Below, piece after piece: positions 22,733 to 58,561 of a DNA stretch of 64,000 nucleotides (positions within the stretch are counted from its first letter, which is position 1; each line of letters begins with the position of its first letter). The notes below the pieces were generated by a model. It worked only from the letters and a program-made list of their open reading frames with translations. It was not told the origin of the DNA and searched no databases. The position numbers and the translations under genes were made by a program. Location of the stretch: contig JAKMXF010000266.1 of assembly GCA_024704765.1 (NCBI GenBank), forward strand, positions 248,001 through 312,000, written 5' to 3'. The stretch is from Oopsacas minuta (taxonomy: Eukaryota > Animalia > Porifera).

Positions 22733-23767
22733 ATGATTTTAATATTTATCTTATCTGTCTTGTGTTTCCAATCTTATGGACAAGATAATTATAATAATTT
22801 CCGGTATAATGCAAATGGTCTACAGCTGTATATTAACGGTGGCTTCTTTTACATACAAATTACTCCAACATTCAGTTACATTGAAGCAAGCCAAATATGT
22901 AGAGAGTATTTTCGTTCATCTTTTCTGCGATTTGACATAGTAAACTTATTGAATCTAACGGCTGAGGTTGTTACCATTAGTTGTGAAGATGAAAATACAA
23001 GTATAAATGATTGTGCTTGGTCCAATTTGGTAGGTGAGGGCTTCGAAGTAATTAATATTACTTGTTTGGATGCTGGACTAGAGGGACGAACTATAAAACG
23101 TTTAGTTGATGGTTCTATTGCCGTTTCAACTACAATACGTGAGGATTATTATATATGGGGACATTTCTGTTATTATAATACTGATGGCTGGGATAATAGA
23201 GCTGCAACACTTGCATGTAGGAGTTTAGGCTACAATGGCGTAGCTCCAGGGAAGGAAAAGTTACTTCTAGTAAAGCCGGTAGTATTTGGGCTTGAACATA
23301 TAAATTGCATTGGTGTGAACACATTTGAAGAATGTACTTTCATTCCTGCTGATGCAAAAGGTCGTTGTGAAAGTGATAAAGTGTTCCAAGTACAATGTGA
23401 TAATGATGTAACTCCAATTCCAACTAGTCCTACTGTCATACATACTGCTACCATTTTTGGAACTACTCCACGTATATCTACCTCAATTACATATCGCACA
23501 AGTACAGTAACAGTAAAGCCTACCAATATTGCAAGTGCTTATATCAACTGGATGATCATAGGAGCTGGAATTCTAGTGATCATTATACTCCTATCGATTG
23601 GAATCATGATTGTACTTGTCCTATGTTGTTGCCACAGGATTACAAAGACAAAACCTCCACTTGAACTGACCCTTGATCACCTATATAGCCGTCCTAACCT
23701 TCCAGCTACGCTACGGACTAGATCGGAACAAGTACCACCACCCCAACAGTACTATGTTCTACCTTGA
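22733..23767 (+). CDS. Single-pass receptor with two degenerate SRCR modules, short Tyr tail, no kinase
   Basis: Signal peptide; WGHFC..GWDNRAATLACRSLGY..FGLEHINC.G..FEEC; TM; tail LYSRP, YYVLP. Confidence 0.8.
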   Translation: MILIFILSVLCFQSYGQDNYNNFRYNANGLQLYINGGFFYIQITPTFSYIEASQICREYFRSSFLRFDIVNLLNLTAEVVTISCEDENTSINDCAWSNLVGEGFEVINITCLDAGLEGRTIKRLVDGSIAVSTTIREDYYIWGHFCYYNTDGWDNRAATLACRSLGYNGVAPGKEKLLLVKPVVFGLEHINCIGVNTFEECTFIPADAKGRCESDKVFQVQCDNDVTPIPTSPTVIHTATIFGTTPRISTSITYRTSTVTVKPTNIASAYINWMIIGAGILVIIILLSIGIMIVLVLCCCHRITKTKPPLELTLDHLYSRPNLPATLRTRSEQVPPPQQYYVLP

Positions 23768-24024
23768 GTAATATCTGCTAGTTTTAGCCAACATTCATTT
23801 TTCCCCTTTTACTGGGTTTCCTTGTGTCTTGTGTTATTTTTTTAGAATTAATGTAAATTAATTATCCAAATCATAAAGATAATAATGGTTTGCATGCATT
23901 TTTATATAACAATTCATTATTGTTGATGTATTAGTAAAGTATTCTGGGTATTCAAATGCACACATTTGCAATTAGATACTATTTATGGACGTTCTGAATG
24001 TGAAAATGCATTCAAGGCAATTCA

Positions 24025-27062: not shown

Positions 27063-28331
27063 TCATGTTACTTCAATGTCGATATACAACGGTTCTATTG
27101 TGGATTGTTCTGTGTCCGTTTGCCCTGGTTTCATTTCCAAATACGTGTGTTGATATGATTGGGTTGAATCCTCTACTTCATTCAAATTGTAATACAATTT
27201 GTCTTTCTTTAACACCTGCTTAATATCTCCATTGGGGTGTGGTGCCATATTGAGATAAAGTTCGTTGTTATCACTCTCTCCATTTTCTACTTTTTCCTGT
27301 TCTTCAATTGGTTTCTCACAGTGACACATTTTATACAAGTAAATTGCTATTCCAATCAGCACTATACCTCCTATAACACAAATAAATAATACTACTGATA
27401 ATGCTATTGCTAAGAATGTAATGTTGGATGTGGTGAATGATATAATAGTAACAGATGAGTTTGTTTGGGGGTTATCGGAACTTGAGGATGTTAGTATGTT
27501 AGTTTGAGTGCTGAATGGTGTATTCATCGTAGTTTGAGTGCTGAGTGGTGTATTCATGGTAGATTGAAAATTTATTGATGCTGTTTGAGTAGAAGTTTGG
27601 ATAAAATTTTCACAAATAAGAGCTATTACATCTTCTCCCATACATCTATTAGCACTATCATCTCTAGCTTCGCTTGTACAGTTAGGAAAACTCGTTACTC
27701 CATCACAGTTTATATTTACAAGCCCATATACACCCCGCCTATTTTCTACTTTTATCCTTTCCATTCCAGCTTTAGCTCCTTCAAATCCCAAACTCTGACA
27801 GGCTAGATTGGCTACATTGTTGTCCCAAATATTTCCATCATAGCAAAAATGCGCCCAAACGAGCTTTCCATCTGCAAAATCAACCAACTGTACAATTCTT
27901 CCGTCTTCTAACTGACGAACATCTCCTACATTGTAGCCTGAGTAAGCTAAGCATGTTAAGTCTATTACCCTATCAGCATCACGAAGTCGCAATGTATTAC
28001 AATTCGCAATAGTTGGAGGGAGATTATCACAGTCGATTTCGAACTCATTAAAGTTATCATTGTAATCTATTCTGAAATATTCAACCATTGCTTCTTCATT
28101 CGATAGATTTCTACAGGCATAGTATAGTTCCCTGTAATCAATCCCTTGTTCACGAATGTTATAATAATTCCCATTACTAGTCATTCCATCTGAACTGTAG
28201 AATATCTGCAAATACTCTTGACCTCCATCAACATGCTGTCTAAAACTGTACTGTTCTTGACCGAAACATTCCAATCCATATCTTAAAATACAGAATAATA
28301 TACTGTGTATCACACAAGTTACAAAGAACAT
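27063..28331 (-). CDS. Single-pass SRCR-like receptor, no kinase; ectodomain near-identical to the RTK at 52886
   Basis: Same architecture as neighbours; tail YLNM, YYNL, YLEM, LYIDI. Confidence 0.85.
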   Translation of the reverse strand: MFFVTCVIHSILFCILRYGLECFGQEQYSFRQHVDGGQEYLQIFYSSDGMTSNGNYYNIREQGIDYRELYYACRNLSNEEAMVEYFRIDYNDNFNEFEIDCDNLPPTIANCNTLRLRDADRVIDLTCLAYSGYNVGDVRQLEDGRIVQLVDFADGKLVWAHFCYDGNIWDNNVANLACQSLGFEGAKAGMERIKVENRRGVYGLVNINCDGVTSFPNCTSEARDDSANRCMGEDVIALICENFIQTSTQTASINFQSTMNTPLSTQTTMNTPFSTQTNILTSSSSDNPQTNSSVTIISFTTSNITFLAIALSVVLFICVIGGIVLIGIAIYLYKMCHCEKPIEEQEKVENGESDNNELYLNMAPHPNGDIKQVLKKDKLYYNLNEVEDSTQSYQHTYLEMKPGQTDTEQSTIEPLYIDIEVT

Positions 28332-28595
28332 TTATTAATCAACTCAATTACCTAGAAAGCAGCAATTTGAGTTAAAAGTACACCTAACATTATTGTTTAC
28401 CATATTCATTATCTTAGGAATCAAATTACCAAGTCAAATCACTCGCAGTAGAGTTAGTTTACGAGATTTATTATAGCTCAATGTGGCGCAATAGAAACTC
28501 TAGGCAAAAGATGATTTAATAGTAGAATATGGTTAATTATTAAATGTGTATCAATACGTAAACTTTACATGACAGTAGGGCCCGTAAGTTTGCTT

Positions 28596-29819
28596 TCAAT
28601 ATAGAGTATAGTATGGCTCTTTTGCAGAATCTTTTGTGCGGGCTTGCTCACATTGTCTAGGTTTCATTTCCAAATACGTGTGTTGATATGATTGGGTTGA
28701 CTCCTCTACTTCATTCACATTGTAATACAATTTGTCTTTCTTTAACACCTGTTTAATATCTCCATTGGGGTACGACTGCATCCTGAGATATGGGTCGCAT
28801 TCCTTTCTCTCTCCTTCGTTGCTTGTTCCTTCTACAATATCTCCTATAACAGGTGTTCTACAGTATCCAGATTTACATAAGCAGATAGCTATCCCAGTTA
28901 GTAAACTTCCTATCATGAGTATTAAAAGGACGATTATTACTATACTTATCCCGGTAATTATGTAAATCATATGCTGGTTTATTTGCGTATTGTTGGTGTT
29001 ATAAGAGGTTGGAGCATTGGAACTCCATGTTGTAGAGTCAGTACTAGATGGTGAATAACTGGGTTCGTTACTTGTTGTTTGCATTTGAGCTGTAGTTACT
29101 TTGCCTTCGCATGTAATAGCTATTACACCTTGAAAGCAATCTCCATCATCAAAACGCGTGTAGTCACTTGTGCATTGTAGGAAATCAGTGGCCCCAGTGC
29201 AATCAATATCCACCAGTCCATAAACGCGTTTATATTTTTTCCCAATTGTAAACTCCGCTCCATTATGATAGCCTAACTTCTGACAAGCAAGATTAGTTGC
29301 ATTCATATCCCAACCTGGATTTCTATCTACGCAAAAATGTGCCCAAATATATTTCCCAGGATATAAGCTTTTCAGTTGTACAATACTACCATCTTCTAAC
29401 TGTAGAATATCTCCCTCATTATATTGGCTGGCATCTATACATGTCAGATTAATAATTACGTCGTTTAGAGGTACAAATTCCACAAAACAATCATCATTGT
29501 TTCTCCGAGGCAAGTCACAATAAATTGCTGCTGAGACTTGATTTTCATCTTCAAACATGTCTGTACTAATATCTTTGGTTTGGAAATCGACGAATGATTC
29601 ATTTGATAGTTCGTTACAAGCAACAATTCCTCCTCTATAATCGAATCTATGCCCACTGACATTATACCATTCTTCTATTCCCATCTTTGGTTGTGAAGGA
29701 AAGGAGATCTGTAACACATTGTTTATTTGTCTGAAAATGATTTCCTCTTGCAAACTACCCGCTTGCAATTGCAATACATAACAAACGGTTAATAATACAA
29801 TAATCGATCTTGATGGCAT
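28596..29819 (-). CDS. Single-pass SRCR-like receptor, Tyr-motif tail, no kinase
   Basis: LQLEDGSIV..WAHFC..GWD..ATNLACQKLGY..YGLVDIDC; tail YLRM, YYNV, YLEM, YYTLY. Confidence 0.8.
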   Translation of the reverse strand: MPSRSIIVLLTVCYVLQLQAGSLQEEIIFRQINNVLQISFPSQPKMGIEEWYNVSGHRFDYRGGIVACNELSNESFVDFQTKDISTDMFEDENQVSAAIYCDLPRRNNDDCFVEFVPLNDVIINLTCIDASQYNEGDILQLEDGSIVQLKSLYPGKYIWAHFCVDRNPGWDMNATNLACQKLGYHNGAEFTIGKKYKRVYGLVDIDCTGATDFLQCTSDYTRFDDGDCFQGVIAITCEGKVTTAQMQTTSNEPSYSPSSTDSTTWSSNAPTSYNTNNTQINQHMIYIITGISIVIIVLLILMIGSLLTGIAICLCKSGYCRTPVIGDIVEGTSNEGERKECDPYLRMQSYPNGDIKQVLKKDKLYYNVNEVEESTQSYQHTYLEMKPRQCEQARTKDSAKEPYYTLY

Positions 29820-30195: not shown

Positions 30196-31473
30196 ATGGC
30201 GTCCCCGATCACTCATCCATCTTCATCAAAAGAGGATGAAGAATCAGAAGATCCATTCGCTCAGGCTGAAACCCAAATACACGAAGCCTTGGATGGTCCA
30301 ATAGAACTTCTTTCTGGGAGGAAAGACAAGTTGTTAGCAGACATAAATGCATTACGTAAAGATTACAATGCAAAGAAATTGACTTGCTCAGAAAGCCTAC
30401 AAGAGTTGAAATCATCTCGAGAGGAATTACTGAACATAACCAGCTTGATGAGAGAGAACCAAGCTCAGGGGGAAATGATGAAAGCAATCAAAAACTTAGA
30501 AGCAAGAATATCCGCACTAGAAGAGGCAGCTCCCCCTTTCCCAGAGATTAATTTCACCTGTGATACAGGGGAGTTAACTGATCTTATTCCTACTCTAGGT
30601 GAGATACGATTAGCCAGTGACCCTGAGCCTACTAGCCACGCTCCTGATCAGTCTGAATCCAATATTCCCATCGATAAAAAGCCTCCTAAATCTTTCGGGG
30701 TCATTGGCAGAAAACCAGGAGAGATTGACAATCCAAATTGCATCTGTGTAGACAATGATAATGATAAGATTTATATTACAGACATGGGTAAGAGTTTGAT
30801 ACATGTCTTCTCAATACAGGGCGAGTATCTACGTGAATTTGCCAAGGGGAAAATGTCAGCACCTCATGGAATAGTATCACATAATGGTTTTGTATACGTC
30901 ACTGACTTTGAAGTGAATACCATATTCAAATTCAAACATGAGGAATATGAATTTGTGAAGAAGACGAATTCTAGGACTCCTGATGAGCGTTTGAATCGTC
31001 CTCATGGTATAGCAGCAGACAGATCAGAATTATATATAGCTGAGCCCTTCAAACACCGTGTATCTGTGTACGGAACAGATCTGACGTATAAAGGCACTCT
31101 TTTGAGTGGTGCAATAAAGAAATCATTTTCCATCCGTGTTATGAATAGACATTTATTCGTTCTGCAGGTTAGAACGAATACAATAAAAGTTCTAGACTTA
31201 CAATCAGGTGATGTAAAGAAATCTTTGGTAATTGACGAAGATGGAATTCCGTTGTTCAATGCACACTCTTTTGTATTTGATTCTAATGAGAACGTATACA
31301 TCTCAAACCATGGCTGTAATTACCTGAAGAAAATCCCCAAGCATGGTGGATTCGTCCAGATGCTACAGCTAGGAAAATGGGGTGTGTCTGACATCAGAGG
31401 AGTAGCTGTTGACAAGGAAGATAGGTTGTTCGTACTGTTTGGGAAGGGACCCTTTAGTGTGGCTGTATTATAG
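30196..31473 (+). CDS. Coiled-coil + NHL-repeat protein 2, paralog of the 21064 gene
   Basis: Both start MASP and share ELK/ELL..I.SLM.ENQAQGE..K.I.NLE and NHL repeats (NPNCI.VD..IYITD, PHGI). Confidence 0.85.
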   Translation: MASPITHPSSSKEDEESEDPFAQAETQIHEALDGPIELLSGRKDKLLADINALRKDYNAKKLTCSESLQELKSSREELLNITSLMRENQAQGEMMKAIKNLEARISALEEAAPPFPEINFTCDTGELTDLIPTLGEIRLASDPEPTSHAPDQSESNIPIDKKPPKSFGVIGRKPGEIDNPNCICVDNDNDKIYITDMGKSLIHVFSIQGEYLREFAKGKMSAPHGIVSHNGFVYVTDFEVNTIFKFKHEEYEFVKKTNSRTPDERLNRPHGIAADRSELYIAEPFKHRVSVYGTDLTYKGTLLSGAIKKSFSIRVMNRHLFVLQVRTNTIKVLDLQSGDVKKSLVIDEDGIPLFNAHSFVFDSNENVYISNHGCNYLKKIPKHGGFVQMLQLGKWGVSDIRGVAVDKEDRLFVLFGKGPFSVAVL

Positions 31474-31660
31474 AAACACAGTTCTATAAGTTATTTTTAC
31501 TTCCGTGTCGCTTATAACTTTTATTCGAAAATTATTCTATTATAGTATAAACGTATGTTAATAATTACAGACAACAGTGAAGCATCCAAAGACGTGGTCT
31601 GTGGAAACGGGAAACTTCTAGAGATAGAGGGGTAAAAAATATCGAGAATTCCTAGTCCAA

Positions 31661-31720
31661 TATAAATGAACCTCCACTAACTGGTGTCTATGGAACCCCG
31701 TTTGTGGAGGTTACATTGTA
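31661..31720. mobile_element. Short TA-flanked hairpin element upstream of BUD13 (MITE-like)
   Basis: TATAAATGAACCTCCAC ... GTGGAGGTTACATTGTA imperfect inverted ends. Confidence 0.45.
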
Positions 31721-31882
31721 TATTATTGGGCAGATACTTGTTTCACTTATACAATGGACCGCGAAATAAATCTTACTAACGGTAAACATAGCTAATATTT
31801 TTCAAGAGTGACCTAATCGCCATATTTGCATTTATGTTGTAAATTAAGAGACTCGATTGATAATTCTAATCAAATAAGCTGT

Positions 31883-33292
31883 ATGGCGTCAAAACTAGAC
31901 TATTTAAAGAAATATCTAAGTAAGAGTGATGAGAAACAACTCCATTCGCAGATTGAGAAGGGAGAAAAGATAAAAATAAAAAAATCTACTAATTTTAAAA
32001 GACGTAAAAAAGTGTCTCAAACAGGAATTATAATCCTCAATCCTGAGAAAGAAGCAACTCAAGTTAGAGATTCTCAATCAAGTGAATCCTCTGACAGTGA
32101 TGGACCTACTGTAGTAGAGTCTAAAGTTCATAGCCGTGAGGCAATGAAGAGACTATGGAATCCTATTAATACAGATACAGTGACGTTATCGAGTGTTAGG
32201 ACTCGATATGATTCAGATGAAGGGTTACCTCCTTCCAGACAGAGACATGATTCAGATAGTGACATAGAAGTTACACGTGATAAATCTAAAAGCTCTGTCA
32301 TTAACTCAGAAAGTTCTCAAAAGAATCAAATAGACTCAGATAGTGATATAGAAGTTACAAGAAAATCTACAGAGACTAGACAACACAAACAAGAGAGTAA
32401 GAGAGATAGGAAGAGTAGATGGAGTAGAGATGAGAAAATGACGTCAGATAACTTATCATGTGCTGTGTTGTTACAAGCTAATGATACAAGTTAGTTAAAA
32501 TACGAAAATAATTACCTTCCCATCGGAAATATTCGATTCCTGAAATTCCACTTTCTTTGTACCAACGAATTTTTTATTTTAAAACCGAATATTTTCAAAA
32601 ATTCTGACCTCGCTATATGTTAATCCTAGCCTAAAACTTTGGTGGGGGGGGTATGCACAGGTATATAGAGAATTGTCAGAGCTATCCAATGAACCTATTT
32701 TTGAAGCTCCAGCTCTCAATTGACCGATTTAATTTTCTTTAGATCAGACAGTATATAGAGATAAACACGGCCACAAGATTGACTTACAGAAAGAGCTAGA
32801 ATTGAAAGCAGGACTGGATAAAGCGAAATTAGAAAGAGATGCTGAATTCAAATTAATGAAGTCTGGGATTGTTCAAGCTAAACTAAAGCAAGAAAAAGTT
32901 GAAGACTTTAAGAAAGAATCGAAGAAAGGCTTAAACCGATATAAAGGTGATGAATCTATGAATGAACTTCTCAAAGCGAAACAACTAATTGATGATCCAT
33001 TGTTAAAGATGAAAAGGAAAAAAGTTAAAAGTGAGTTATTCCATATAATTCGCGTATCACATTTTTGCCCCAAATTTCATCACATTTAATCAATCTAGAA
33101 AATCGACCTAAAAAGAGATGTAAGCCTACATACCAAGAACACTTCCCTAGCAACCGTTTCAATATAAGACCTGGATACAGATGGGATGGAGTAGATAGAT
33201 CTAACGGATATGAGAAGGAGAGATTCAGAATTATTAATGATAGAAAAGCTGATAATGACGATTATTATAAACTCGGAAATGAAGATCTGTAA
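31883..33292 (+). CDS. BUD13: BUD13 homolog (RES splicing complex); exons 31883-32489, 32743-33030, 33099-33292
   Basis: N-terminal [20 protein letters not shown] repeats, TVYRDK, IDDPLL, C-terminal [21 protein letters not shown]; phase-1 junctions match. Confidence 0.9.
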
Positions 33293-33468
33293 CAGTTATA
33301 CAATATTTTGATTAAATAATTATACGGTAGACTTTGAAGAGGTTGGTGAGTATGCGATTTACACGAACACTAGCCAGTCAAATGCTTACGAATATCCATG
33401 GTGTATTATAATGTAATTAATAACTAGCGTATTTAATAGTTTTTAATATTTGTTGCTAGCCTTAATAA

Positions 33469-34260
33469 ATGGATGATCCTCGAGAAAATCATTTTTTCCA
33501 GATTAGACTAGCGGAACAGGCAGAGCGATATGAAGAGATGGTACAGATGTTCAAACAGCTGATTTTAAAGGATCCAAAGAAGCTCACCGTAGATCAGAGA
33601 AATTTACTCTCAGTTGCTTACAAAAATGTAATTGGAGTACGCCGCGCTGCTTGGAGAATTCTCTGCTCCTTAGAAGCTAGAGAAATGGACAAGATGAAAA
33701 GGGAAGCGTCGAATGAGTTAGAAGTTATCGCTGAGTACAAGATCAGTATTGAGAAGGAGCTAGACGGGATTTGTCTGGAAATACTCACTCTTCTAGATGA
33801 ATCTATAATACCTAATGACGCAGAGAGTGAAGCTAGAGTTTTCTACTACAAAATGAAAGGCGATTACTTACGCTACAAAGCTGAATACAAAAATGGAGCT
33901 GAGAAGCAAGCAATAGCAGAAGAAGCATTGACTTCTTATACATCAGCAAACGAATTGTCAGTTGATTTAGTTTCAACTAACCCAATTAAATTGGGACTAG
34001 CTCTAAACTTCTCAGTATTCTACTATGAGATTATGAATGAACCAAAAGATGCATGTAAACTTGCTAATAAAGCGTTTAACGATGCTATTTCAGATCTTAA
34101 TTCTCTCTCCGAGAATGAATATAAAGACGCAGCTCTTATAATGCAGCTTTTGAGAGATAACCTGACCTTATGGACAGCTGATCAGCCTCAAGACGAGCCA
34201 GTCGAGCCTGTAGGGCCACAAGATGATGATGATGATGATGATGAGCCTAAACCTGAGTAA
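33469..34260 (+). CDS. 14-3-3 protein, intronless, with acidic poly-Asp tail
   Basis: AEQAERYEEM, RNLLSVAYKNVIG.RR.AWR, KMKGDY.RY, PIKLGLALNFSVFYYEI, IMQLLRDNLTLW. Confidence 0.98.
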   Translation: MDDPRENHFFQIRLAEQAERYEEMVQMFKQLILKDPKKLTVDQRNLLSVAYKNVIGVRRAAWRILCSLEAREMDKMKREASNELEVIAEYKISIEKELDGICLEILTLLDESIIPNDAESEARVFYYKMKGDYLRYKAEYKNGAEKQAIAEEALTSYTSANELSVDLVSTNPIKLGLALNFSVFYYEIMNEPKDACKLANKAFNDAISDLNSLSENEYKDAALIMQLLRDNLTLWTADQPQDEPVEPVGPQDDDDDDDEPKPE

Positions 34261-34718
34261 CATATTTATGCATTACCCTTGTGTACTAACTAATCTTACC
34301 TTATATTGTCAATCTCACTTATAAGCAGTATCCTATTCGTTATACCTAATACACTACAATTAATTCTGAAATATTCTGTAATACTGTTACATAGTGTATG
34401 TCTAATATATTACAGTAAACTTAACATTAATATGAACTTCATATCATAAGCAGAGAATGTTCTATGTAAATTCATTCAATTCGGTATTTACCAAGTTCTA
34501 CACTCTCAGTACCAAATTTCGCTCGAATATATTCAGTTAATTTCGAAAAATTAAGAGCCAAATCCGAATTTCCCTCATTTTACTGCGATAAAAAACTTCC
34601 ATTTTTCATGAATTTGAGATTTGGCAGTATTTCTTGTTATTTTGGGTACAACTCTCAATACAAATACTGGAATTCTTGTTCCAAATTTAATTATTTACAA
34701 ATACATAAGTTCACATAG

Positions 34719-37700
34719 ATGCTGTTGAAACCATTCAGATACACCTGCAGACATTTATGCAGATTATCATCTACACTAACAGCAGGAGAACGTATACACG
34801 GATATACAGTTAATAAAGTTGTAGACTGTCCTGAATTGAGTTTTATCGCTACAGAATTAACCCATGTAAATACAGGAGCACGTCACTTACACATAAACCG
34901 ATCTGACAGTAACAATACGTTTGCTGTATCGTTCCGTACAACACCCATGGATAGTACAGGAGTACCGCATATCCTGGAGCATACTACGTTATGTGGTTCA
35001 GAGAGATTTCCCTGTAGAGACCCATTCTTTAAAATGCTGAATAGATCCTTGGCTACTTTCATGAATGCTTATACTTCTAGTGACAGTACAATTTACCCAT
35101 TCAGTACTCAGAATAAGAAAGATTTCAATAATCTTATGGGTGTATATATGGACTCTGTGTTCTTCCCTTTATTGAGAGAAAACGATTTTAAACAGGAAGG
35201 ATGGAGACTGGAGTATGAAAATAACCGCGATAAAGACTCAAGGATTATATTCAAGGGTGTAGTTTTTAACGAAATGAAAGGTATATTTTCTAACTGTTTA
35301 ATAACGAATAAATACGAATGCTTAACAAAACCAATATTCAATTCATTTACATTTACACAGAGAATATAAATACTATTTAGCAGTAATTTCACTGAATTTA
35401 GTATAGGGAGGTTCGATGTCAATCACTTGATCTTGTTCCATAATAGATTCAACAGCTGGTGGTGCAGGTGGTAGAGTCAGTCTGAAGCTTTTATCAATCA
35501 CCTCGTAGAAAACAGGGCTCTTGAATATAGGGATATAGCATGTTATCCTATCTTCACTACGTAGTGTAGTATGGTGTAGAGATTCGTATATATGATTGCT
35601 TTGCATTGTACCCTCATTTTGGTATTGATTATCCTTTGCATGAGTATTGACATATATACTAGTCTCTTTCTTGCGTTTTATCTGTAAAAGTTTCTTCTTT
35701 TCAGAGTATAGTCTTAATGCTACCCCCGTTACAATACATATTGTTATGTAGGATAGGAATAATAGAATTGATAGTAGAGATATAACGATTAATTGCGAGT
35801 CCAATTGTAGCTTAATAGCGCTGTCTAACGTCTCATTATAACAATGCACAGCCCTTATACATAGCGTTATGAGTGAAATAATAATGTTGTACTGTCGATA
35901 CATTATTCGTTGTTAAAGTTTATCAAAAACACTCTTATATATTTGGAAGATTCGTATTATCTCATTCTATGTTTTTACCTAAGATATCTGCTCATAGTCC
36001 TGACATGACTGATGTGTATGATTGATATATTTTCCAAGAAAACTAGATCAGAATACATTACAGTGCTGTTTATACGCTGTAATACCGTATTAGCCACATA
36101 TGCGTTATTAATATAGAATTTAATATGACCTACGTTGACAATTATTTGGATTATGTAATAGTTATTATCTTAGTTGGTATACCAATTCGTTATTGTTGTT
36201 GTTTTGATAATTGTTGATCTAACAAAATTCCATTAATTTGCTGTATACATTTTACTTCTCCCTTTGGAAACATTTCTGTTTTGCTGTTTTAAATAGAGAG
36301 TACAAGTAAAATTTTTCATATATCAAGCGTATTTTCGAAAATCTGGCTAGGATTTAGAAACGCCGAATTGACTCAGTTTGCTTGATTTCATAGCAATTTT
36401 ATCAATTTGGCTGTAGCTGGTTTAAAATTCCCGATTTATGCTGTAATAGAACTTAATTCCCTCTTAGGCGTTATGGCTGGTAGAGATGAACTGTTCATGG
36501 TAGCACAACAGAGATTCCTTCTACCTGATCACACATATGGTCATAACAGTGGAGGAGATCCTCTTGTAATACCTCAGTTAACTTGGGAATTTCTTAAACA
36601 GTTTCATGCTACTCACTACCATCCAAGTAATTCTGTATTCTATACTTATGGAGATATTCCTATTGAAGAACATTTGGAGAGAATAAATGGAGAAGTTTTG
36701 AGTAAATTCAATAAGATTGAGGTTAAAACTGAAATACCTTTGCAAGATAGGTAAATCTTAGATACCAATAGAATGTAGCCATTCCTTCACTTTCCCCTAC
36801 GATAATTTCTCGCAGTTTCATTGTTAAATTCGTGGATTTCAAGTTTTACAGCCATAAATAGCAATTTGATGAATTTATTTGGGAAAAAAATGTTCAGATA
36901 GATAGCCAGAATACTTATTCAGCATTTTTATAAGAAAATTGACTTTATGTTTTATTGTAATTCATAGATGGAGCAATGCGAGAAGAGAACTAATAAACTC
37001 TCCAACTGATCCGATGTCACCAGACCCCAATAAACAACATGTAGTAGCTGAAAACTATCTACTTGGTCCGAGTAGTGATGTACTAAACCAGCGTCTAATG
37101 GTGGTGCTATCTCATCTCCTCACGGCGGGGCCTAACTCTCCCTTCTTCAAATCTCTAATTGAGACTAACACAGGGTTAAGCTATTCACCAGGTTCTGGGC
37201 TAAATGCTAATGGCAAGCAAGCTGTATTCTCAATAGGATTGAAGGGAGTTAAGAATGAAGATGTTGAGGATGTTATTACTACCATACAGGATACGTTTGA
37301 AAAGGTAATGATTATGCAAAGTCTTAAATTGTATAAATATGGTCACAAACCTTCAAGCAACATATATTTGTTGTATTGAACTCTGCGTATATCGAAGCAA
37401 TAATCGCGGTCCCTTGAGCTTCGGTATAATGGGAGTTGACTCTAGAACTTTTAATAGAGTTTGAAAGATGGATTTGAAGAAGAGAGAATAGAAGGAATTG
37501 TCCATCAGATGGAATTATCAATAAAGAGAGATACTGAGAACTTTGGACTTGGATTATTACACTCTCTTATGCCTACATTCATGCATGGAGCTGATCTTAG
37601 GGAAATATGTGATTTCCAAAAACACATTGACTACATTAAATCATATGACGGATGGGGGTCTCTGTTGAAAGAGAATTTCTTAGACAATTCTCACAGACTA

Positions 37701-40512: not shown

Positions 40513-42271
40513 ATGGGATTGATATTTGTATTTCTTATTGTTGCAAGTGAACTACGTAGTGTATATGCAAATTCTACAGTAACTATCAGCCAATACATTG
40601 CCTTAATTGCGAAATTTAAAGCTACGATAATTTCAGGTTTTGCACTAACTTTGTTGCTTGCTATCTTATTGATCGCGTTTGTTGCTATCCTGTTTGTTGT
40701 TGTTCTTAGACGAAGGAGGATTCACAAGAAAATGATTACTCAAGTCGAGGATTCACGACCATCACCACCCGAATCATGCATGCTATACAATGTTAGGTCA
40801 TGTCTTTTACCGAATAACTACCCACAATGTAGCATTACAGAGCTTGCAGTTCTGAGCGCAGTTCCTACCTCAGAACTAAATCAATCCAGTAAATCATCTC
40901 TAGCTATTTATGAGTCGCTAAATTTCTCTCGAGATTTCATTGTCCCAACTTTCGAGCAAAGAACTTTTCGTAGTATTTCTGATGAGAATGAGACAGAGCA
41001 CATATACGTAGAGGTTAATGTAGATGAAGATACACCGTGTTTCATGTACGATGATTCTAGAGCTGTATCGCCGCCAGTAGAAACTATTAAAGAGATATTT
41101 TCGTTAATGTCCGTCAGGAGGTATAGGGAAATTAGTAGAATTGATTTAGTCGAGTATACAGAGCTAGGGAGAGGTAATTTCGCCGTTGTGCATAATGGGA
41201 TCTGGAAATCAATGAAAGGTGATATCCCAGTTGCAATAAAAAGTCTCAAAATGGAGGATGAAGAATCTTGTCTTAGTTTCTTACAAGAAGCATCTATTCT
41301 AGGTCAATTCAATCATCCTAATGTTCTCAAGCTATTCGGCGTAGTTACACGGAATAATCCGTTAAAAATGGTGACAGAACTGATGAGTAGCGGTTTGTTG
41401 GAATTTTTGAAGAACATTTTGAAGAATAATATCATAACATTCGATAGATTTAGTCCATATTTCCTGCGTTTCACACTGGATATTGCTAACGGCATGGAAT
41501 ATCTGGCTAGGAAACGGTATGTACATAGAGATCTGTCTGCGAGGAATATTCTCCTCACTCAGGAATTAAATTGTAAGATTGGTGACTTTGGATTAGCAAG
41601 AATGGTTGCTAATGATAACCAATATGAGCGAAATGTTGAAGAGTACATTCCCTTTAAATGGACTCCTCCAGAAGCTATTTTTTATAAGAAATATTCTGAG
41701 AAGAGTGATGTTTGGAGCTTTGGTGTTACCCTCTTTGAAATTTGGTCAGTAGGACAAGCACCTTGGCCTCATCATAACATCCAACAAGTGAGTTTGCATT
41801 ACGAATCATTTTATAGTCAACTCCCTGTATTACGAACACAGATATATGAAATACCCGGTTATATCGAACTCAGCTTATAGGCTAGTAATCGCGGCCTCTT
41901 GAGCTTCGATATAACGGGGGAGTTGACTGTACATCATTATTATATTACTATTGTTATTATTATTATAAGTTGGGAAAATTTACATGTATTTTGTATTACA
42001 GGTTATAGGAAAGATATCTGAGGGTGTGTTACTATACCCTCCCTCTGGTTGTCCCAGAGGGGTCTACCAGCTGATGACTAAGTGCTGGCATCCAGATAAA
42101 GAATTTAGACCTTGTTTCGCTGAAATAGCTTCGATCCTCCACACAAAAGGAAAGACTCTTCTTGAACGTGGAAAAACCCCTGAAGAAATGGTAGACTTAG
42201 GTCTGGTGCCTTCTGCTTCAAAAAAATTATTTATAGACCTACAAACTGCTTACCTTAATTCTACATCATAG
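40513..42271 (+). CDS. Receptor tyrosine kinase with almost no ectodomain; exons 40513-41787, 42002-42271
   Basis: ATG 40513 opens a signal peptide, about 20 aa, then a TM; GRGNFA, VAIK, HRDLSARN, DFG, FKWTPPE, SDVWSFG. Confidence 0.85.
41812..41931. mobile_element. MITE family A copy in the RTK intron
   Basis: TATAGTCAACTCCC ... GAGCTTCGATATAACGGGGGAGTTGACTGTA. Confidence 0.75.
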
Positions 42272-46190: not shown

Positions 46191-46227
46191 GGTGCGGTAG
46201 GTGACTAAATCATATTAACTGTCAGAT

Positions 46228-46597: not shown

Positions 46598-46632
<35 letters not shown>

Positions 46633-46795: not shown

Positions 46796-46835
<40 letters not shown>

Positions 46836-49984: not shown

Positions 49985-52425
49985 ATGTATCTTTTTGCAA
50001 TAATAATTATATTAACTTCATTATTGTATAAACATTCCATTGCCCCAGACCCCGAATTTGCTTTCCGATTTATGGATGGTTTACAAATCCATTTTAAGCA
50101 AGGACGACATCTAAAATGGTACTATATTGATGTTGAAGATTTCTCATTTCATGTAGGAGCCATTGCCTGTCGGGACTTGTATAATACTTCTTTATACTAT
50201 TATTACTCTGAGGGACAAAAAACTCAAGTGCCGGATGGGCGAGTGAATATATACTGCAGTTCTGACTCCGTTTCCATTCAAAGTTGTCAAATTCTTCCAA
50301 TCGACAAAAATGCAATCGGTCTTAGTGTAAAGACGATATGTCATGATCCTAAGTTGCATAAAAATCCTCCAATAAGGCAATTAGCCGACAATAGTGTGTA
50401 TTTATTACACGAAATCAACCCCGAATCATCTGAAAATTTGTTGATTTGGGGAAAGGTCTGTTTCAATAATGATCATACAAAATCAGTTGCTTGTACAAAC
50501 TTGCAAAATGAAGATGTGATGGCTGCTGGGAGCATACAACATAGTGGTTATGAGCAGATCACATTAATAAACTTCACATGCGGTCCAGATGTATTGAAAC
50601 TCGAGGATTGTTCATACGAAATAAACGACGAATCAGATTGTGAAGATAATGGAGAAGCTCCACTTATATGTGATAATACAACTAATAGCACAACTACTCA
50701 AATTATCAATCCTATTGTTCAAACAAATACTATAACTACCAAGGGAACTTCAACCGCAAATGGAACTTCAACCACAAATGGAACTTCAACCACAAATGGA
50801 ACTTCAAATCCTCCTACTAACAGCAATACAACAACATTATCATCCCATACAAGCACTACTATACAATCTCTACCTATCAGCATGACGGTTCTAACTGCTA
50901 TTGCTACAACACTAAGTTTATGTGTTATCCTCACGATAATAATATTTGTACTGATATTCTTTGCACTCGTGATCACGATAAGGTTAAAAAGGCCAAAGGT
51001 TAGACAACAGAATGAGCACTACCAGAGTGGCACGAACCTAGACTATGAAGTCATAGAACCAGAAGTACAACAAGAATATTCCAACGTGGAAACGATTCAC
51101 AGATCAATCAGTATAACTTCTCAAAATAGATACCAACAATTAGTTCCACAAGAAGTGATCTCTGAGTTGGAAGCTATCTATTCAGTTAGATCTCTTGAAC
51201 CACCTGAAGATGGTATATACGACGATCTTCTCCACACAAATGATCTGGTAGTTCTCACTGTTGAAGATAGAGAATATATGAACATTTCTAATGAAGAGGA
51301 ACGAAAAAATACGTATCTACCATTTTCTTGTGAACTTCCCTGTTTCATTGGTCAGAATGAGTCACAAATTTGGGAGCCAGAAGAAACATTGAAAGGTATC
51401 TACGCTCAGATGGCACACAGCCGATATAGAGAAATAAATTCAAATGAATTGACAAGAAGAGAGCTCCTAGGTGAAGGAAATTTCGGCAATGTACACTCCG
51501 GTATATGGAAATCTCATAATCGAGAAGTTCCAGTGGCAATCAAGAGTCTAAAAGTTGAAGATAAAGATTCTAGTGTTAGTTTCCTACAAGAAGCAGCTAT
51601 CCTTGGACAATTCAACCATCCAAATATCCTCAAACTATTAGGAGTAGTCACTCTAACTACACCTCTAATGATGGTAACAGAACTGATGCGAACTGGACTC
51701 AAGGAATTTCTTTACATTATAGATAATTCAGATGCTTTCCCTATGGACCAGCTTGGAGAAGTGTTCCTCCGATTTACGTTGGAAATAGCAAGTGGGATGG
51801 AGCATTTAGTTTACAAGCAACATGTTCATAGAGATTTAGCAGCTCGGAACATCCTGGTCAGTCACAACTTAACTTGCAAGATCGGTGATTTCGGATTAGC
51901 TCGCGGCGCTAGAGTCAATGATGAATATTACCTATCACAGGGCGGATTAGTTCCAGTGAAATGGACAGCTCCAGAAGCTATGATCTTTAAGAAATACTCT
52001 GAAAGGAGTGACGTGTTCAGCTATGGGGTAACTCTATACGAAATATGGTCTATAGGAGAAGTACCATGGGCAGGAATTGATAACGAAATTGTAAGTACAA
52101 AATTTTCCATTCATTATAAGTGATAATTCCCTGTTATTTATTTATTGCATTGTAGGTTATACAAAAGGTGTGTAAAGGAGAAGTGATGGATCCCCCAGGA
52201 GGATGTCCTAGAAATGTCTACAAACTGATGGTTGACTGCTGGCACCCAGCTAAAGACTACAGGCCCACTTTTAAAGATATAATCAGTCGCTTACAGAAGC
52301 GAAATCAGATATTGCATAAAGGCAAGAATAACTCTAGATTAGGAGAAGCAAATCAAACAAATCGAGCATATTCTGATTTGCAACAAGTATACACCAAGTC
52401 TAAGCAAGTATATTTTGATATTTAA
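49985..52425 (+). CDS. SRCR-like receptor tyrosine kinase; exons 49985-52090, 52156-52425
   Basis: Two SRCR-like modules, NGTSTT x3 stalk, TM, GEGNFG, HRDLAARN, DFG, VKWTAPE. Confidence 0.9.
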
Positions 52426-52885
52426 GATTCGTCTTGTCATTACTATTTGTATTCATTTTTGTTGATAAATAACTTAATGTACTTGTGATAGAATTAATCT
52501 AGTTATATGTTGTGCGTATTATAAATAATTAAATTTACAAGAATTTTGATGAAGTATACTTAGGTCATCCAATCGATCTTGTTCCTTTATAGATAACTTT
52601 ACTTAATTGAATAAATGATTTAATGCGATTACCGGAGATGGCACAATGTTTATTATAACAATAATGAAAGGAATATTGCAGAGTTCAAAAGTATTCACGA
52701 AATGATTTATTGCATTAGTATAATTCGAGAAATAATGCATTACGAAGTGTGTTTAGACTGGTTTTCTGATTTCTAGGATACGTTGAATAGTGAATATAAA
52801 TGGTATAGAGATAGGTATACTTTCTGTTTAATATATAAAGTGTTGATTTCAAGGTAATTTGGAAAAAATTGAATTAATTAAGACA

Positions 52886-55370
52886 ATGAATTTTGTAACT
52901 TGTGTGATACACAGTATATTATTCTGTATTTTAAGATATGGATTGGAATGTTTCGGTCAAGAACAGTACAGTTTTAGACAGCATGTTGATGGAGGTCAAG
53001 AGTATTTGCAGATATTCTACAGTTCAGATGGAATGACTAGTAATGGGGATTATTATAACATTCGTGAACAAGGGATTGATTACAGGGAACTATACTATGC
53101 CTGTAGAAATCTATCGAATGAAGAAGCAATGGTTGAATATTTCAGAATAGATTACAATGATAACTTTAATGAGTTCGAAATCGACTGTGATAATCTCCCT
53201 CCAACTATTGCGAATTGTAATACATTGCGACTTCGTGATGCTGATAGGGTAATAGACTTAATATGCTTAGCTTACTCAGGCTACAATGTAGGAGATGTTC
53301 GTCAGTTAGAAGACGGAAGAATTGTACAGTTGATTGATTTTGCAGATGGAAAGCTCGTTTGGGCGCATTTTTGTTATGCTGGAAATAATTGGGACAACAA
53401 TGTAGCCAATCTAGCCTGTCAGAGTTTGGGATTCGAAGGAGCTAAAGCTGGAATGGAAAGAATACAGATAGAAAATAGGCGGGGTGTATATGGGCTTGTA
53501 AATATAAACTGTGATGGAGTAACGCGTTTTCCTAACTGTACGAGCGAAGCTAGAGATGATAATGCTAATAGATGTATGGGAGAAGATGTAATAGCTCTTA
53601 TTTGTGAAAATTTTATCCAAACTTCTACTCAAATAGCATCAATAAATTTTCAATCTACCATGAATACACCACTCAGCACTCAAACTACGATGAATACACC
53701 ATTCAGCACTCAAACTAACATATTAATGTCCTCAAGTTCCAATAACCTCCAAATCAGTTCATCAAATATTCCAGAACAAACCAATACTTCTCCAATTATA
53801 ACAACAACACCAAATACTCTAAACAGGGAGACAGACAATCTAATAGCCATAATTGCTGTCGTAGCTTCAGTGGTGGTAATCATAATAATACTATTCATAG
53901 TAGTATTCTTCATTGCTCTTTATTGCATTGTTAATAAGCGTAAGAAGAAACATGTTGTTGATGGTAGAGATACAAATGGTGATGTGCATGACTATAATAT
54001 TCGGTCTACAACAAATCTCACTGAATCTGGCCACACATACAATTCTCCAGGGCAATTGTTCGGTACCTCATTTACTCAATCAGGACAGAGTGGAGGAAAT
54101 ATTTATGAAATGAGTCCGTTGGAAGATGTTCAAGAGTTGTATTATGAAACATCAAATACTGATATACAAGAGGATATCTACTCAGTGTTGATATACGATA
54201 GTGATCAAGTTGTACCAAATTTCACTGACAGACAATACCATGAAGTTCAACACAAAACTGAAGAAGACAATCTCTATTTACAACCTAATGACGAACTTCC
54301 TTGTTTTATCTATCAAAATGATCCGATTTTCTGGCAACCCGAAGAGACGGAAGGTGGAATATATTCACAAATGTCAGAGAAAAGATATCGTGAAATCAAT
54401 CCAAGTCTTCTCATAAAATATGAACAACTTGGACAGGGAAATTTTGGATTTGTCCACAGTGGAATTTGGAATTCAAAGAAAGGTAGAATTCCTGTAGCAA
54501 TAAAAACCCTAAAAATGGAAAACAAAGAAACGAGCATCACTTTTCTACAAGAAGCAGCTATTCTAGGACAGTTCAATCATCCTAATGTCCTCAAGTTATT
54601 AGGTGTAGTGACTCTATCCAATCCAATAATGATGGTAACAGAACTATTGACCAGTGGATTGCTGGAGTATTTAAATGAAGTTAGAACGTCAGGTGAAACA
54701 CAAATACATCCACTAGGCAACAATCTGGCAAGATTTACGACAGATATAGCTCTCGGAATGCAATACTTAGCGTGCAAGAAATACATCCATAGAGATCTAG
54801 CTGCAAGGAATATCCTTGTTAGCCAAAAACTATCGTGTAAAATAGGAGACTTCGGTTTAGCTCGTATGGCAAAGGATAATGACTACTACGTGTCGTCTGG
54901 GGGGTTAATTCCATTGAGATGGACAGCACCAGAAGCCATCTTCTATAAGAAGTATTCAGAAAAGAGTGACGTTTGGAGTTATGGCATTACCTTGTATGAG
55001 ATTTGGTCTATAGGTAGAATTCCTTGGGATAAATTTACTACTGAAGAGGTAGGTTTTTCTTGTATACTTTGCTCACTTTTTCACGTCGTATTTATTTTTA
55101 TTATTTTCACAGGTTGTTGACAATGTCTCACAGCTAAAACTCCAATCTCCACCTACTGGATGTCCAAGGTTCATATACGAAATAATGGTAAGTTGTTGGG
55201 ATCCTAATAAAGACTCAAGACCAAGTTTCAACGAGATTTTACTAAGAATGAATTCAAATAAAAGCAAGATGTTATCGAGAGGGAACCAAAAGGCAGAGAA
55301 ACTAAATCTAGGCTTGGATCCTATCCTGAGCAAATTTCTCTTCATTGACCTACAGAATAAGTACCAATAG
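52886..55370 (+). CDS. SRCR-like receptor tyrosine kinase; exons 52886-55048, 55113-55370
   Basis: ATG 52886; GQGNFG, VAIK, HRDLAARN, DFG, DYYVSSGGLIPLRWTAPE. Confidence 0.9.
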
Positions 55371-55832
55371 ATTTTGTTATCAGGATATTTGCTTTGTATT
55401 AAGTATTATATATCCAAATTTGTTCATTTCCCAATAGTTAATTTCATAAATCTTTAAGTGACACACCCTGAATAATATTCGTGAAAAGCTTGTAAGAGGA
55501 ATTCGCCATAGCTAATAGGTCATGTCACGTTGACCAGTATTAGTTGCCCTAATCTGTATATGAAGAATATTACTTCCATATTAAGATATTCCAAAAATGT
55601 ACAACATGATTCTCAGTAACCAATCCACCAGGTTCTTAGTTAGTTGATCCAATTACTGTGCACTAGGTACTAATCATGATTTAGTATCAAATTGCACATG
55701 TCAACTACGTAATATATGATTGTATCTTGATTGTAGAAGAGAGATATGTTTGGGAGTATATTAAGATCGAATAGTTCTTTTGAATTATTTTCTCTTCAAC
55801 TGATCCAAATTTAAAATTATTTGGGAGTAATA

Positions 55833-58561
55833 ATGCGTTGGAATAGGTTTTGGATTCGAGCACAGTTTTATATACTTTTGTTCTTTATCTTTTCATTTGT
55901 AAATGGGCAGAGTCAGTGGGATGTTCGGGAGACTGGAAATGGAGTTGAGATCTATATGAATAATAATAACTGGTACTATTTACGGCATAGTATGTTCGAT
56001 TACAAGGAAGGTGGACCTCTTTGTGATGCTCTGTCTTCATCACTAGTTGACTATGAGGAAATATCAATTGATGACTCAGAACTTGTAAAGTTGAGCTGTC
56101 CAGATAATGTTGATATGCTTTCTGAGTGCAATGGAAACATTGATAGTGGACAAGATGACATGTTGGGGATAAACTGCATGGCGAGTGATGACGTGGAAGG
56201 AAGCGTATATAGACTAGAAGATGGGAGAATCTTGTACCTTTATAAACCAGCTAAAATAAATTTCTTCGTATGGGCACACATATGTTACAAGGAGAATAAT
56301 GGTTGGGATACTAAGGCAGCTAATTTATTCTGTCAAGAACTTGGCTTTGAAAACGTGGTAGAAGACATGGAGAAAGTAAAATACAATGATAATGTAGAAG
56401 CATTTGGTTTGAAGAGTTTTCAATGCGATAGTGAGGCGACTTCTTTCAGCGATTGTACCTTCAGTGCGAAAGGGGGAAGTGGAAGATGCAAAGATGATGA
56501 AGTTATTACAATCGAATGTGAGAATCCTATAACTACAGCACAAGCAACAACTCCTACGACACAACCAACAACACAACCTACAACACAACCTACAACTCCT
56601 ACTACACAACCTACAACACAACCTACAACTCCTACTACACAACCCACAACCCCTGCAACAACACAACCAACAACTCCTACGACACAAGCGACAATACCTA
56701 CGACACAAGCGACAATACCTACAACGAAAGCACAGACAATAATTGAAGGAACTATCAATGAATCAACGATGACTACCGTAACAAATACAACACAACATAA
56801 TACAACTATACAACAAAGCCACTCAAACACTGATTTTTCATCTCAAACAATAACACCGTCATCAAATACCACCGGAAATCCGAATCCAGCAATTAATAAC
56901 CAACCCATGACAATCATTGCAATCATAATCTGTTTGTTAGTTTTTGTTCTGCTACTAATCGTCTGTTTCATTATACTCTTCTTCGTTGTTTTAAAGTATA
57001 GAAAAGGAGGATTAAGATCAAAGGAAATCAATGGTCGACACAACTTATCTTTGCTGGTCCAACCTATAAACAGTGATAGCGAGCAGTATTATAATGCATT
57101 TCCAGCTTCAGACTACATGGAACCAACTAAGATGTTTGATCAAAACTATTCTAATATAGATACAATTTTTGATGAAAGTATATACGAAGAGTTGCTTGTT
57201 GGCTATGCACACTATGTACCATCCTCTGATGAGAGGAATTACTACTCGATTGATGAAAACGAAAAAAATTCCAATGAATACCAGTGTACGACCGAAAATA
57301 CATATCAAACTTCGCTGTTCTGTGAATCTGAGTACTGGGAACCAGGCACTACAATTGAAGGAATTTATGCTCAAATGTCACACAATCATTTCCGTGAAAT
57401 TTGTAGAAGTGAATTGGTCCAGGACAAAATTTTGGGAGAAGGGAATTTCGGGTTAGTTATGAGTGGAAACTGGAATGGCAGAGGAAGTAATTTACCAGTT
57501 GCTATGAAAAGTCTTAAAAACGAAAGTGAAGGATCAGATATAAACTTTCTCCAAGAAGCTGCTATCTTGGGGCAATTTAATCATCCGAACGTTCTCAAAC
57601 TTCTGGGAGTGGTCACTATTACCAAACCCCTTACAATGGTAACGGAACTATTGCGTACTGGGCTCAAAGAATATTTAAATAACACAAGACGTTCGGGTGA
57701 AGCCAAATTTGATGTTTTCGGTGCTCTTTTCCTAAGATTCAGTAACGATATTGCAAACGGTATGCGGCATTTATCGAGTAAGAAGTTCATTCATAGAGAT
57801 CTGTCTGCCAGGAATGTTCTAATTAGCAACGGTTTGAGATGCAAAATATCAGACTTCGGTCTAGCACGTCATGCAATTGAGGAAGACGAATACTACACAT
57901 CTTCTGGTGGTCTGATTCCTCTCAAATGGACAGCTCCTGAAGCTATCTTCTACAAGAAGTATTCAGAGAAGAGTGATATTTGGAGTTACGGCATTACACT
58001 CTATGAAATATGGTCTGTAGGAGCAGTACCTTGGAAAGGAGTCAAAGCGGATGAAGTGAGTTGCAATAAACTTTTAATTATTTAATTGAGCGCAGGGGGG
58101 CTAGAAAAATGCAAGACTTATGAATAAATATTTACCGCAACCATCTAGAAGATTGTTATGATAAGCTTACGCCTCAATTTACTATGTAACAAATTTTTTT
58201 GTATTTTCAAAAACCGACTAATATTTTGAAAAAGGCCCACGAAAATACTATTCAAAACGGTAATCTATTTTCACACACTAATTATCTGCGTTTTTAGATT
58301 ATCCAAAACGTAAGCAATGGAATTATTCTCTCTCCGCCTTCTGGCTGTCCAAAGAAAGTATATGAACTGATGGTGGACTGTTGGAATCCCTCCAAAGACA
58401 TGAGACCAACTTTCACTGAGATTGCAACTAATTTTAAGGGTAATGACGATGTATTTCTTGAAAGGGGAAACAGTAGGTTAGAACAAATGGATTTCGGACA
58501 ACCTCCTGAAACCGTGAAGAACCTGTTCCAAGACCTCCAAACAAAATATATGAGTGTATAA
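55833..58561 (+). CDS. SRCR-like receptor tyrosine kinase with TTQP-repeat stalk; exons 55833-58055, 58298-58561
   Basis: ATG 55833; GEGNFG, VAMK, HRDLSARN, DFG, EYYTSSGGLIPLKWTAPE. Confidence 0.9.

Follow-up and report, generated by a model that had tools for sequence, protein, structure and literature searches.

A tandem-SRCR receptor tyrosine kinase family in the glass sponge Oopsacas minuta, with conserved kinase-less paralogues and an ectodomain matched by gene conversion

We analyzed a stretch of 64,000 nt (the window; contig JAKMXF010000266.1, positions 248,001 to 312,000 of the forward strand) of the hexactinellid, or glass sponge, Oopsacas minuta. It carries a family of receptor tyrosine kinases (RTKs) with a tandem-SRCR ectodomain, along with paralogues that lack the kinase or the ectodomain. 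One kinase-less gene, A27063, has received nearly its whole ectodomain from the kinase gene K52886 by gene conversion. We lean towards the reading that the kinase-less paralogues are conserved docking co-receptors of the kinase members and that conversion has matched one of them to its kinase. The family has so far been found only in O. minuta and in related, presumably glass-sponge, assemblies.

Genes are named here after the position of their first letter in the window and lie on the (+) strand unless given otherwise. The window is AT-rich (~35% G+C) and dense with long open reading frames (ORFs), mostly without introns. Domain calls were made with Pfam at its curated gathering cut-offs, which for SRCR is 26.1 bits. 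Four read runs (X1-X4) of one O. minuta sample cover the locus. The relatives are contigs from five ENA metagenome assemblies, reached via related proteins; synteny and 67-82% identity in the neighboring housekeeping genes suggest that these are presumably other glass sponges. The relative for which 60.8 kb was rebuilt is referred to as species B.

Gene content of the locus

The initial annotation had listed 13 single-pass genes in this region. All of them were found intact, with the coordinates and types proposed for them, and the proposed end of the region (58561) coincides with that of the last gene. All 13 frames are open, and hydropathy analysis gives one internal hydrophobic span in each protein. 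The genes and the two conversion tracts are the following (aa, amino acids; TM, transmembrane segment; TK, tyrosine kinase):

A22733, 22733-23767 (+): kinase-less receptor with a signal peptide, two SRCR-fold domains, a Thr/Ser stalk, a TM and a 44-aa tail with a QQYYVLP end; Pfam SRCR, E 6e-7
T24025, 24025-25038 (+): tail-only membrane protein with a ~20-aa ectodomain, a TM flanked by Cys and a 257-aa tail that contains 20 Tyr
A25404, 25404-26708 (-): kinase-less tandem-SRCR receptor with a 109-aa tail and four conserved Tyr sites; Pfam SRCR
A27063, 27063-28331 (-): kinase-less tandem-SRCR receptor; mosaic gene
A28596, 28596-29819 (-): kinase-less tandem-SRCR receptor with a four-site Tyr tail as in A25404; Pfam SRCR, E 7e-8
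Conversion tract 1, 27464-28349 (-): 887 bp, 97% identity, partner 52867-53753 (+); blastn
Conversion tract 2, 27127-27238 (-): 112 bp, 97% identity, partner 28660-28771; blastn self-comparison
T35373, 35373-35903 (-): tail-only membrane protein of 176 aa, antisense within intron 1 of the PreP gene
K40513, 40513-42271 (+): membrane tyrosine kinase with a ~20-aa extracellular stub; exons 40513-41787 and 42002-42271; Pfam TK, E 2e-67
K42874, 42874-45471 (+): tandem-SRCR RTK; exons 42874-45006 and 45166-45471
M46228, 46228-47460 (+): one Cys-poor SRCR-fold domain, a Thr/Pro mucin stalk, a TM and a 142-aa Tyr tail
M48131, 48131-49351 (+): paralogue of M46228, 62% identical
K49985, 49985-52425 (+): tandem-SRCR RTK; exons 49985-52090 and 52156-52425
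K52886, 52886-55370 (+): tandem-SRCR RTK, ectodomain donor to A27063; exons 52886-55048 and 55113-55370
K55833, 55833-58561 (+): tandem-SRCR RTK; exons 55833-58055 and 58298-58561

The product of A25404 is present in the protein database as P0101, and that of K40513 is 100% identical to the annotated O. minuta protein P0108.

Gene conversion between a kinase gene and a kinase-less gene

A27063 and K52886 form the only couple in the window with near-identical ectodomains. Tract 1 has sharp ends: it opens 18 nt ahead of the ATG, reaches the middle of the stalk and stops short of the TM. In the ectodomain tree, the ectodomains of A25404, A27063 and A28596 group with the K52 kinases (99/98), and that of O. 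minuta A27063 stands beside K52886 inside the K52 clade (100/99), away from its positional orthologue. The kinase gene was therefore the donor. Contigs built from the raw reads (four DNA runs) support two copies of tract 1: depth rises ~2.5-fold within it, and the assembly graph forks at 27464 and at 28325 into loose ends that run into the flanks of K52886. The ratio of non-synonymous to synonymous substitution rates (dN/dS) in tract 1 is 0.51, a value derived from few changes (15.5 non-synonymous and 7.5 synonymous). Tract 2 lies in the tail cores of A27063 and A28596 and includes their second and third Tyr sites. Taken together, the two tracts make A27063 a mosaic in which the sensor of a kinase gene is placed on the tail of a kinase-less gene.

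The kinase arrays of relatives also bear signs of homogenization. We computed dN/dS on recent duplicates because synonymous sites between species were judged saturated at 50-60% protein identity. In tandem duplicates (K55a/b and K49a/b of species B, K55a/b of contig L003), the kinase half shows 5- to 15-fold less synonymous divergence than the ectodomain half, with values of 0.06 and 0.94, respectively, in K55a/b of species B. This indicates that the 3' kinase halves alone have been repeatedly homogenized while the sensors diverged. The dN/dS values of the duplicates are 0.35-0.77 in the ectodomain (1.97 in one pair) and 0.16-0.36 in the kinase, so the ectodomains evolve faster than the kinases, in line with the diversified recognition system that the initial annotation had proposed.

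The same annotation considered a polymorphic self/non-self function. An allorecognition locus, in which ectodomains vary between individuals and drive fusion or rejection as in Hydractinia Alr and Botryllus fuhc, would be consistent with a cluster of single-pass receptors with Tyr-motif tails, with ectodomains less conserved than the kinases, with the duplicate pair at an ectodomain dN/dS of 1.97 and with active gene conversion. The variation found points the other way. Between the haplotigs L005 and L006 of species C, receptor genes differ at 0.8-4.9 sites/kb vs 0-15 sites/kb in the flanking genes, and in the O. minuta sample one 9.4-kb contig over 24025-27156 contains no variant. This polymorphism test is weak, with one diploid each for species C and O. 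minuta. Orthology across species is also mostly one-to-one. We thus regard allorecognition as a very improbable role for this locus.

The tandem-SRCR ectodomain

Eleven of the 13 genes are linked in one family by an all-against-all BLAST, which returned no similarity of T24025 and T35373 to any other gene of the set. Pfam SRCR scores above the cut-off (28-47 bits) in the second ectodomain module of eight genes (A22733, A25404, A27063, A28596, K42874, K49985, K52886 and K55833). An alignment of ten ectodomains contains two modules with conserved Cys and 12 invariant Cys columns. The AlphaFold2 (AF2) model of K55833 (aa 22-240, 29 sequences) has a pLDDT of 91.8 and a pTM of 0.86, and Foldseek aligned it over ~230 columns to tandem SRCR structures, namely CD163 SRCR5-9, avian Pit54 SRCR1-2 and CD6.

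The first module of the M genes scores 15-19 bits against the SRCR profile, under the cut-off. Modeled alone, the first module of M46228 gave a pLDDT of 85.8, and its best 50 fold matches in the PDB all contain SRCR (TMPRSS2/13, factor I, CD6, CD163, MARCO, CD5; TMq 0.5-0.77). The models thus describe the family ectodomain as two domains, the first SRCR-like and poor in Cys, the second a canonical SRCR. M46228 and M48131 do have a single module, as the initial annotation stated, but its nature is corrected here: it is the first, Cys-poor SRCR-fold domain. Their orthologue in species B (627 aa) still has both SRCR domains, so the loss in the M genes is recent.

Searched with a profile, 1.84 billion representative proteins (50%-identity library) yielded ~25 single-stretch matches with this N-terminal ectodomain, about half of which are kinase-less, judged by their length.

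The kinase members

Five genes (K40513, K42874, K49985, K52886 and K55833) encode a PK_Tyr_Ser-Thr domain (PF07714) with E-values of 1e-62 to 1e-67. Their first-exon ORFs end at ~215 of the 258 profile positions. Each gene has one phase-0 GT-AG intron (64-242 nt) in the kinase C-lobe, after which a short second exon completes the kinase domain and ends in a common DLQxxY motif. The motifs VAxK, HRDL(A/S)ARN and PxxW(T)APE are kept in all five kinases and DFG in four, and each has one or two activation-loop Tyr. The typical layout of an RTK (signal peptide, extracellular domain and one TM) is found in all but K40513.

In the kinase tree the five group as a single clade (100/99) comprising five orthogroups (K40, K42, K49, K52 and K55), which excludes the Eph-like kinases of fish and demosponges as well as other RTKs of O. 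minuta. Eph is the closest solved family by kinase-domain sequence. Pfam detected no ephrin-binding domain, FN3 repeats or SAM domain in the family, which is therefore not assigned to Eph. The top sequence match, PDB entry 9p9u ('EGFR', 678 aa), was discarded as a close relative, since it is a chain of human EGFR in which two copies of the kinase add their scores.

K40513 has five orthologues (65-69% identical). In four of them the N-terminal layout agrees with that of K40513 (signal peptide, a short stub with N-glycosylation, TM); the remaining one (P0114) was called without its N-terminus. A missing upstream ectodomain exon was considered and rejected, since only ~640 bp separate the end of PreP from the ATG and the orthologues start alike. 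K40513 is a derived member of the SRCR-RTK clade and has most likely lost its sensor. K42874 opens with TTG and has no in-frame ATG (an ATG at 42879, 5 nt downstream, is out of frame); at ~44830 it encodes DLG instead of DFG. Its orthologue in species B has both the ATG and the DFG, and is 86% identical in the kinase and 82% in the TM.

Cytoplasmic tails and tail-only genes

The non-kinase cytoplasmic parts contain 6.96% Tyr vs 3.52% in neighboring genes (Fisher p 9e-8). The tails of A25404, A27063 and A28596 (A-type tails) have four Tyr sites common to three paralogue groups and several species: YxxM, YYN, (Q)HTYxxM and a C-terminal Yxx(I/L/Y). Overall, the tail motifs are YxxM, YxN and Yxx(I/L), with one YxxL-x7-YxxI pair in T24025 that is only approximate in species B, and no clear immunoreceptor tyrosine-based inhibitory motif (ITIM) was found among them. 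The Tyr richness and the conserved motifs point to phosphotyrosine signaling; the motifs do not specify the acting kinase. The tail of A22733 is almost unchanged in four species, with nearly invariant last ~30 residues and, at its end, a YxxΦ motif of the endocytosis type.

The two tail-only genes, which the initial annotation counted as parts of the system, are real and conserved but have no detectable similarity to the other eleven genes. T24025 contains YEEI, two YEGM and the YxxL-x7-YxxI pair. Its positional orthologues are 27-29% identical and keep Y(E/D)EI, both YEGM and YDYIT; no Pfam family scores above its cut-off (the best is TMEM154, 17 bits vs a cut-off of 30.3). T35373 matches no Pfam family at all and has conserved Tyr motifs including Y(V/E)NT and IYE(S/T)L. 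It lies in PreP intron 1 (~35281-36467), which is ~1.19 kb long vs 0.33 kb at most for the other PreP introns, and orthologous ORFs (30-43% identical) occupy the same intron in three other assemblies. Both proteins may serve many kinases, and they are at most candidate members of the SRCR system.

Conservation in relatives and neighboring genes

The initial annotation arranged the genes as a matrix of receptors with and without kinase or ectodomain and suggested a search for the same matrix in other genomes. We found it gene by gene and collinear in species B and partly in four more assemblies. The kinase-less and kinase blocks are indeed separated by housekeeping genes; four genes intervene, not three:

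Spacer block, 30196-39873 (+): unrelated genes called by Pfam, namely NHL-repeat (30196-31473), BUD13-like (from 31826), 14-3-3 (33469-34260) and the multi-exon PreP (34719-39873)
EGF-repeat gene, 58928-62371 (+): outside the SRCR family; 1147 aa, single-pass, with teneurin-type EGF (Pfam) and NPLY in a short tail

The spacer genes have the same order in the relatives. The counterparts in species B are, in order:

ORF at 19524 (479 aa) and NHL-repeat gene at 21022: present, order kept
A22733: 50% identical
T24025: 27-29% identical, depending on the alignment method, motifs kept
A25404: 59% identical
A27063: 38% identical
A28596: 46% identical
NHL-repeat, BUD13-like and 14-3-3 genes: present, order kept
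PreP with T35373 in intron 1: T35373 orthologue 41% identical
K40 (K40513): 69% identical
K42 (K42874): ~70% identical in the cytoplasmic half, 49% in the ectodomain
M type (M46228, M48131): a single gene
K49: three copies, one broken
One extra kinase-less gene without a counterpart in the window
K52: two copies
K55: two copies
EGF-repeat gene: present, order kept

The orthologues of A22733 in three other assemblies are 46-50% identical overall, the full-length orthologues of A25404 (P0102, P0103 and P0104) 58-60%, and those of A28596 46%. The kinase-less orthologues are thus full length and 46-60% identical vs 67-82% for the neighboring housekeeping genes. Between O. minuta and species B, identity is 78-86% in the kinase, 51-67% in the juxtamembrane region, 37-68% in the ectodomains and 58-73% in the kinase-less tails. 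The ectodomain tree places a further, independent kinase-less derivative of K52 in species B. With collinear orthologues in relatives, all cells of the matrix are old except for the single-module class, and the sequences mark the kinase-less and ectodomain-less forms as genes under constraint and not as debris.

These data bear on the possibility that the kinase-less, ectodomain-less and single-module genes are functionless, broken receptor kinases. Some members would fit such decay: K42874 with its missing ATG and its DLG, the M genes with one SRCR domain lost and a dN/dS of 0.75-0.9, and, in species B, one fragmented kinase gene and a kinase-less copy whose tail is very short. Decay is contradicted for most members, however, by the 13 open frames, by full-length orthologues of each kinase-less or ectodomain-less type at distances where even 14-3-3 is only 67-76% identical, and by tails that are conserved like the ectodomains or better. 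We give it hardly any weight as a general account of these genes.

Some further features were noted in and around the locus. Two paralogous genes encoding a coiled coil and NHL repeats (21022-22392 and 30196-31473, ~33% identical) bracket the kinase-less block, and both keep their position in relatives (63-78% identical). The EGF-repeat gene marks where the kinase array ends on its 3' side, a position conserved in three assemblies, and is syntenic in species B and D. On contig L003, a hAT-type transposase gene (ZBED1-like, 13392-15302) interrupts the kinase array of one relative between two genes of the K55 type. On contig L007 of species B (16454-18910), a K49-type kinase gene is split into SRCR, kinase and C-terminal ORFs, by either a frameshift or extra introns. 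Self-comparison of the window also revealed a 1054-bp inverted repeat (1461-2514 vs 2936-3989, 99.5% identity) and a 780-bp direct tandem repeat (10883-11658 vs 11741-12516, 93% identity).

Proposed mechanism and alternatives

We propose that the family grew by tandem duplication of a receptor whose ectodomain consists of two SRCR-fold domains on a mucin-like stalk, and that it gave rise to ancient, stable derivatives that lost the kinase (A22733; A25404, A27063 and A28596; M46228 and M48131) or the ectodomain (K40513). Full-length members would be self-sufficient: ligand would cluster them, upon which activation-loop and juxtamembrane Tyr would be phosphorylated. The kinase-less members would act as docking co-receptors that sense ligand via the same kind of ectodomain, which in A27063 is nearly the same as in K52886. 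Upon co-clustering, their tail Tyr (two YxxM, one YYN and the C-terminal Yxx(I/L/Y)) would be phosphorylated in trans, by family kinases or by cytosolic kinases of the Src/Syk type, and the signal would be rerouted to PI3K-p85-like and Grb2-like SH2 proteins. The conversion tracts, orthology, conserved motifs, folds, gene models and family tree are observed; ligand binding, pairing in trans, phosphorylation and the SH2 partners are the steps that we infer here. A22733 would more likely be an endocytic receptor of the scavenger type, given the YxxΦ-type end of its almost invariant tail.

Several observations weigh against a co-receptor role. The TM cores of the 13 proteins contain no Asp, Glu, Lys or Arg, and only T24025 has one Lys near the cytoplasmic end; the pairing mode of DAP12/FcRγ is thus absent. 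The SH2-type readings of the tails are pattern matches only. No homology between the tails and the juxtamembrane regions of the kinases was detectable (hhalign probability 4%), from which it follows that the kinase-less genes are not simply truncated receptors; an origin of the tails as juxtamembrane remnants was set aside on the same result. Aphrocallistes vastus retains synteny with O. minuta for nearly half of all genes (PMC10282587), and since this is the glass-sponge default, conserved linkage is no proof of functional coupling. The dN/dS between M46228 and M48131 is near neutral. K42874 may have been recently disabled or may use a non-AUG start. The runs X1-X4 are genomic DNA, as seen from their flat depth, contigs spanning the spacers and Nextera ends, and lend no RNA support to the genes.

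The main rival explanation is that these genes are independent actors of an ordinary tandem family, in which the kinases work as homodimers, the kinase-less SRCR proteins are endocytic scavengers or ligand sinks, and T24025 and T35373 are chance neighbors. This would agree with full-length receptors that each hold all that an RTK needs, with the uncharged TMs, with the endocytosis-type end of the A22733 tail, with synteny as the genome default, and with two tail-only genes that have no similarity to the family and of which T35373 is confined to a PreP intron. It is harder to reconcile with an 887-bp conversion through which a kinase-less gene obtained its ligand-binding part from a kinase gene, with the signaling part left untouched. 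The four Tyr sites of the A-type tails also exceed the needs of an endocytic signal, and an ectodomain-less kinase without evident ligand sensing of its own is kept in at least five assemblies. We consider independent action a serious possibility, though the less probable one, and favor docking co-receptors.

The initial annotation inferred a diversified recognition system whose sensors, catalytic chains and docking chains assemble in trans. Taken further, glass sponges would possess a modular phosphotyrosine recognition system, arisen independently of vertebrates, in which kinase-less SRCR sensors, a sensor-less kinase and LAT-like docking chains, all encoded at one locus, assemble on a shared ligand, with conversion matching the ectodomains of sensor and kinase. 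We hold this to be rather unlikely. If true, it would place the logic of paired receptors and adaptors in a syncytial animal without known immune cells.

Comparison with known systems

RTKs are characteristic of animals, and the early lineages each assembled sets of their own. The locus shows how one such family diversifies: ectodomains diverge, kinase halves are homogenized, the kinase or the sensor is repeatedly shed, and the shed forms persist under constraint in relatives that have diverged deeply. In the literature we found no description of SRCR-ectodomain RTKs or of their kinase-less partners in sponges, and neither of the two glass-sponge genome papers checked mentions tyrosine kinases or SRCR. 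Lineage-specific RTK radiations are known in sponges, as in the Amphimedon kinome, in choanoflagellates and in filastereans (organism-specific tyrosine kinase families: PMC8662651), and SRCR expansions are known in sponges (PMC4772301). The family resembles the lineage-specific radiations in being clade-restricted and tandem-expanded with a non-vertebrate ectodomain; it differs from them in its tandem SRCR ectodomain, its conserved kinase-less and ectodomain-less derivatives and its fixed genomic order.

Other systems share single aspects of the organization. Sets of plant receptor-like kinases, receptor-like proteins and receptor-like cytoplasmic kinases (RLK/RLP/RLCK) also comprise receptors with a kinase, receptors without one and kinase-only forms, but they have no homology to this family, in which partnering is putative. 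K40513 is alike to STYK1/NOK and LMTK as a TM-anchored kinase without a ligand-binding domain, again without homology. T24025 and T35373 have the architecture of LAT, PAG/Cbp and NTAL (a tiny ectodomain, one TM and a long multi-Tyr tail, with juxtamembrane Cys in T24025 only), but no sequence homology to them, and their link to the SRCR family is by position only. The extreme ectodomain polymorphism of Hydractinia Alr and Botryllus fuhc is not seen in the receptor cluster (one diploid each).

ErbB3, EphB6/EphA10 and TrkB.T1 are RTK paralogues that have lost the ability to phosphorylate while keeping ligand binding, and act as docking partners or dominant negatives. The kinase-less genes described here are likewise kinase-less RTK paralogues; unlike in co-receptors of the ErbB3 type, the kinase domain is absent and not degenerate, and the tail forms a conserved module of its own.

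Vertebrate paired receptors, such as Siglec-5/14, Siglec-11/16 and the CEACAMs, are kept similar by gene conversion (PMC4042635, PMC5701461, PMC2832619). A27063 and K52886 are alike to them as linked genes with a near-identical ectodomain, produced by a tract that ends before the TM, and with differing signaling parts. They differ in combining an RTK and a Tyr-tail receptor instead of an ITIM receptor and a DAP12-coupled one, in having SRCR and not Ig domains, in lacking a charged TM residue and in forming a single couple in O. minuta. The ectodomain swap between K52886 and A27063 thus parallels the paired immune receptors of vertebrates in a non-bilaterian animal, and the two genes offer a concrete, testable pair with which to ask whether co-receptor logic predates bilaterians.

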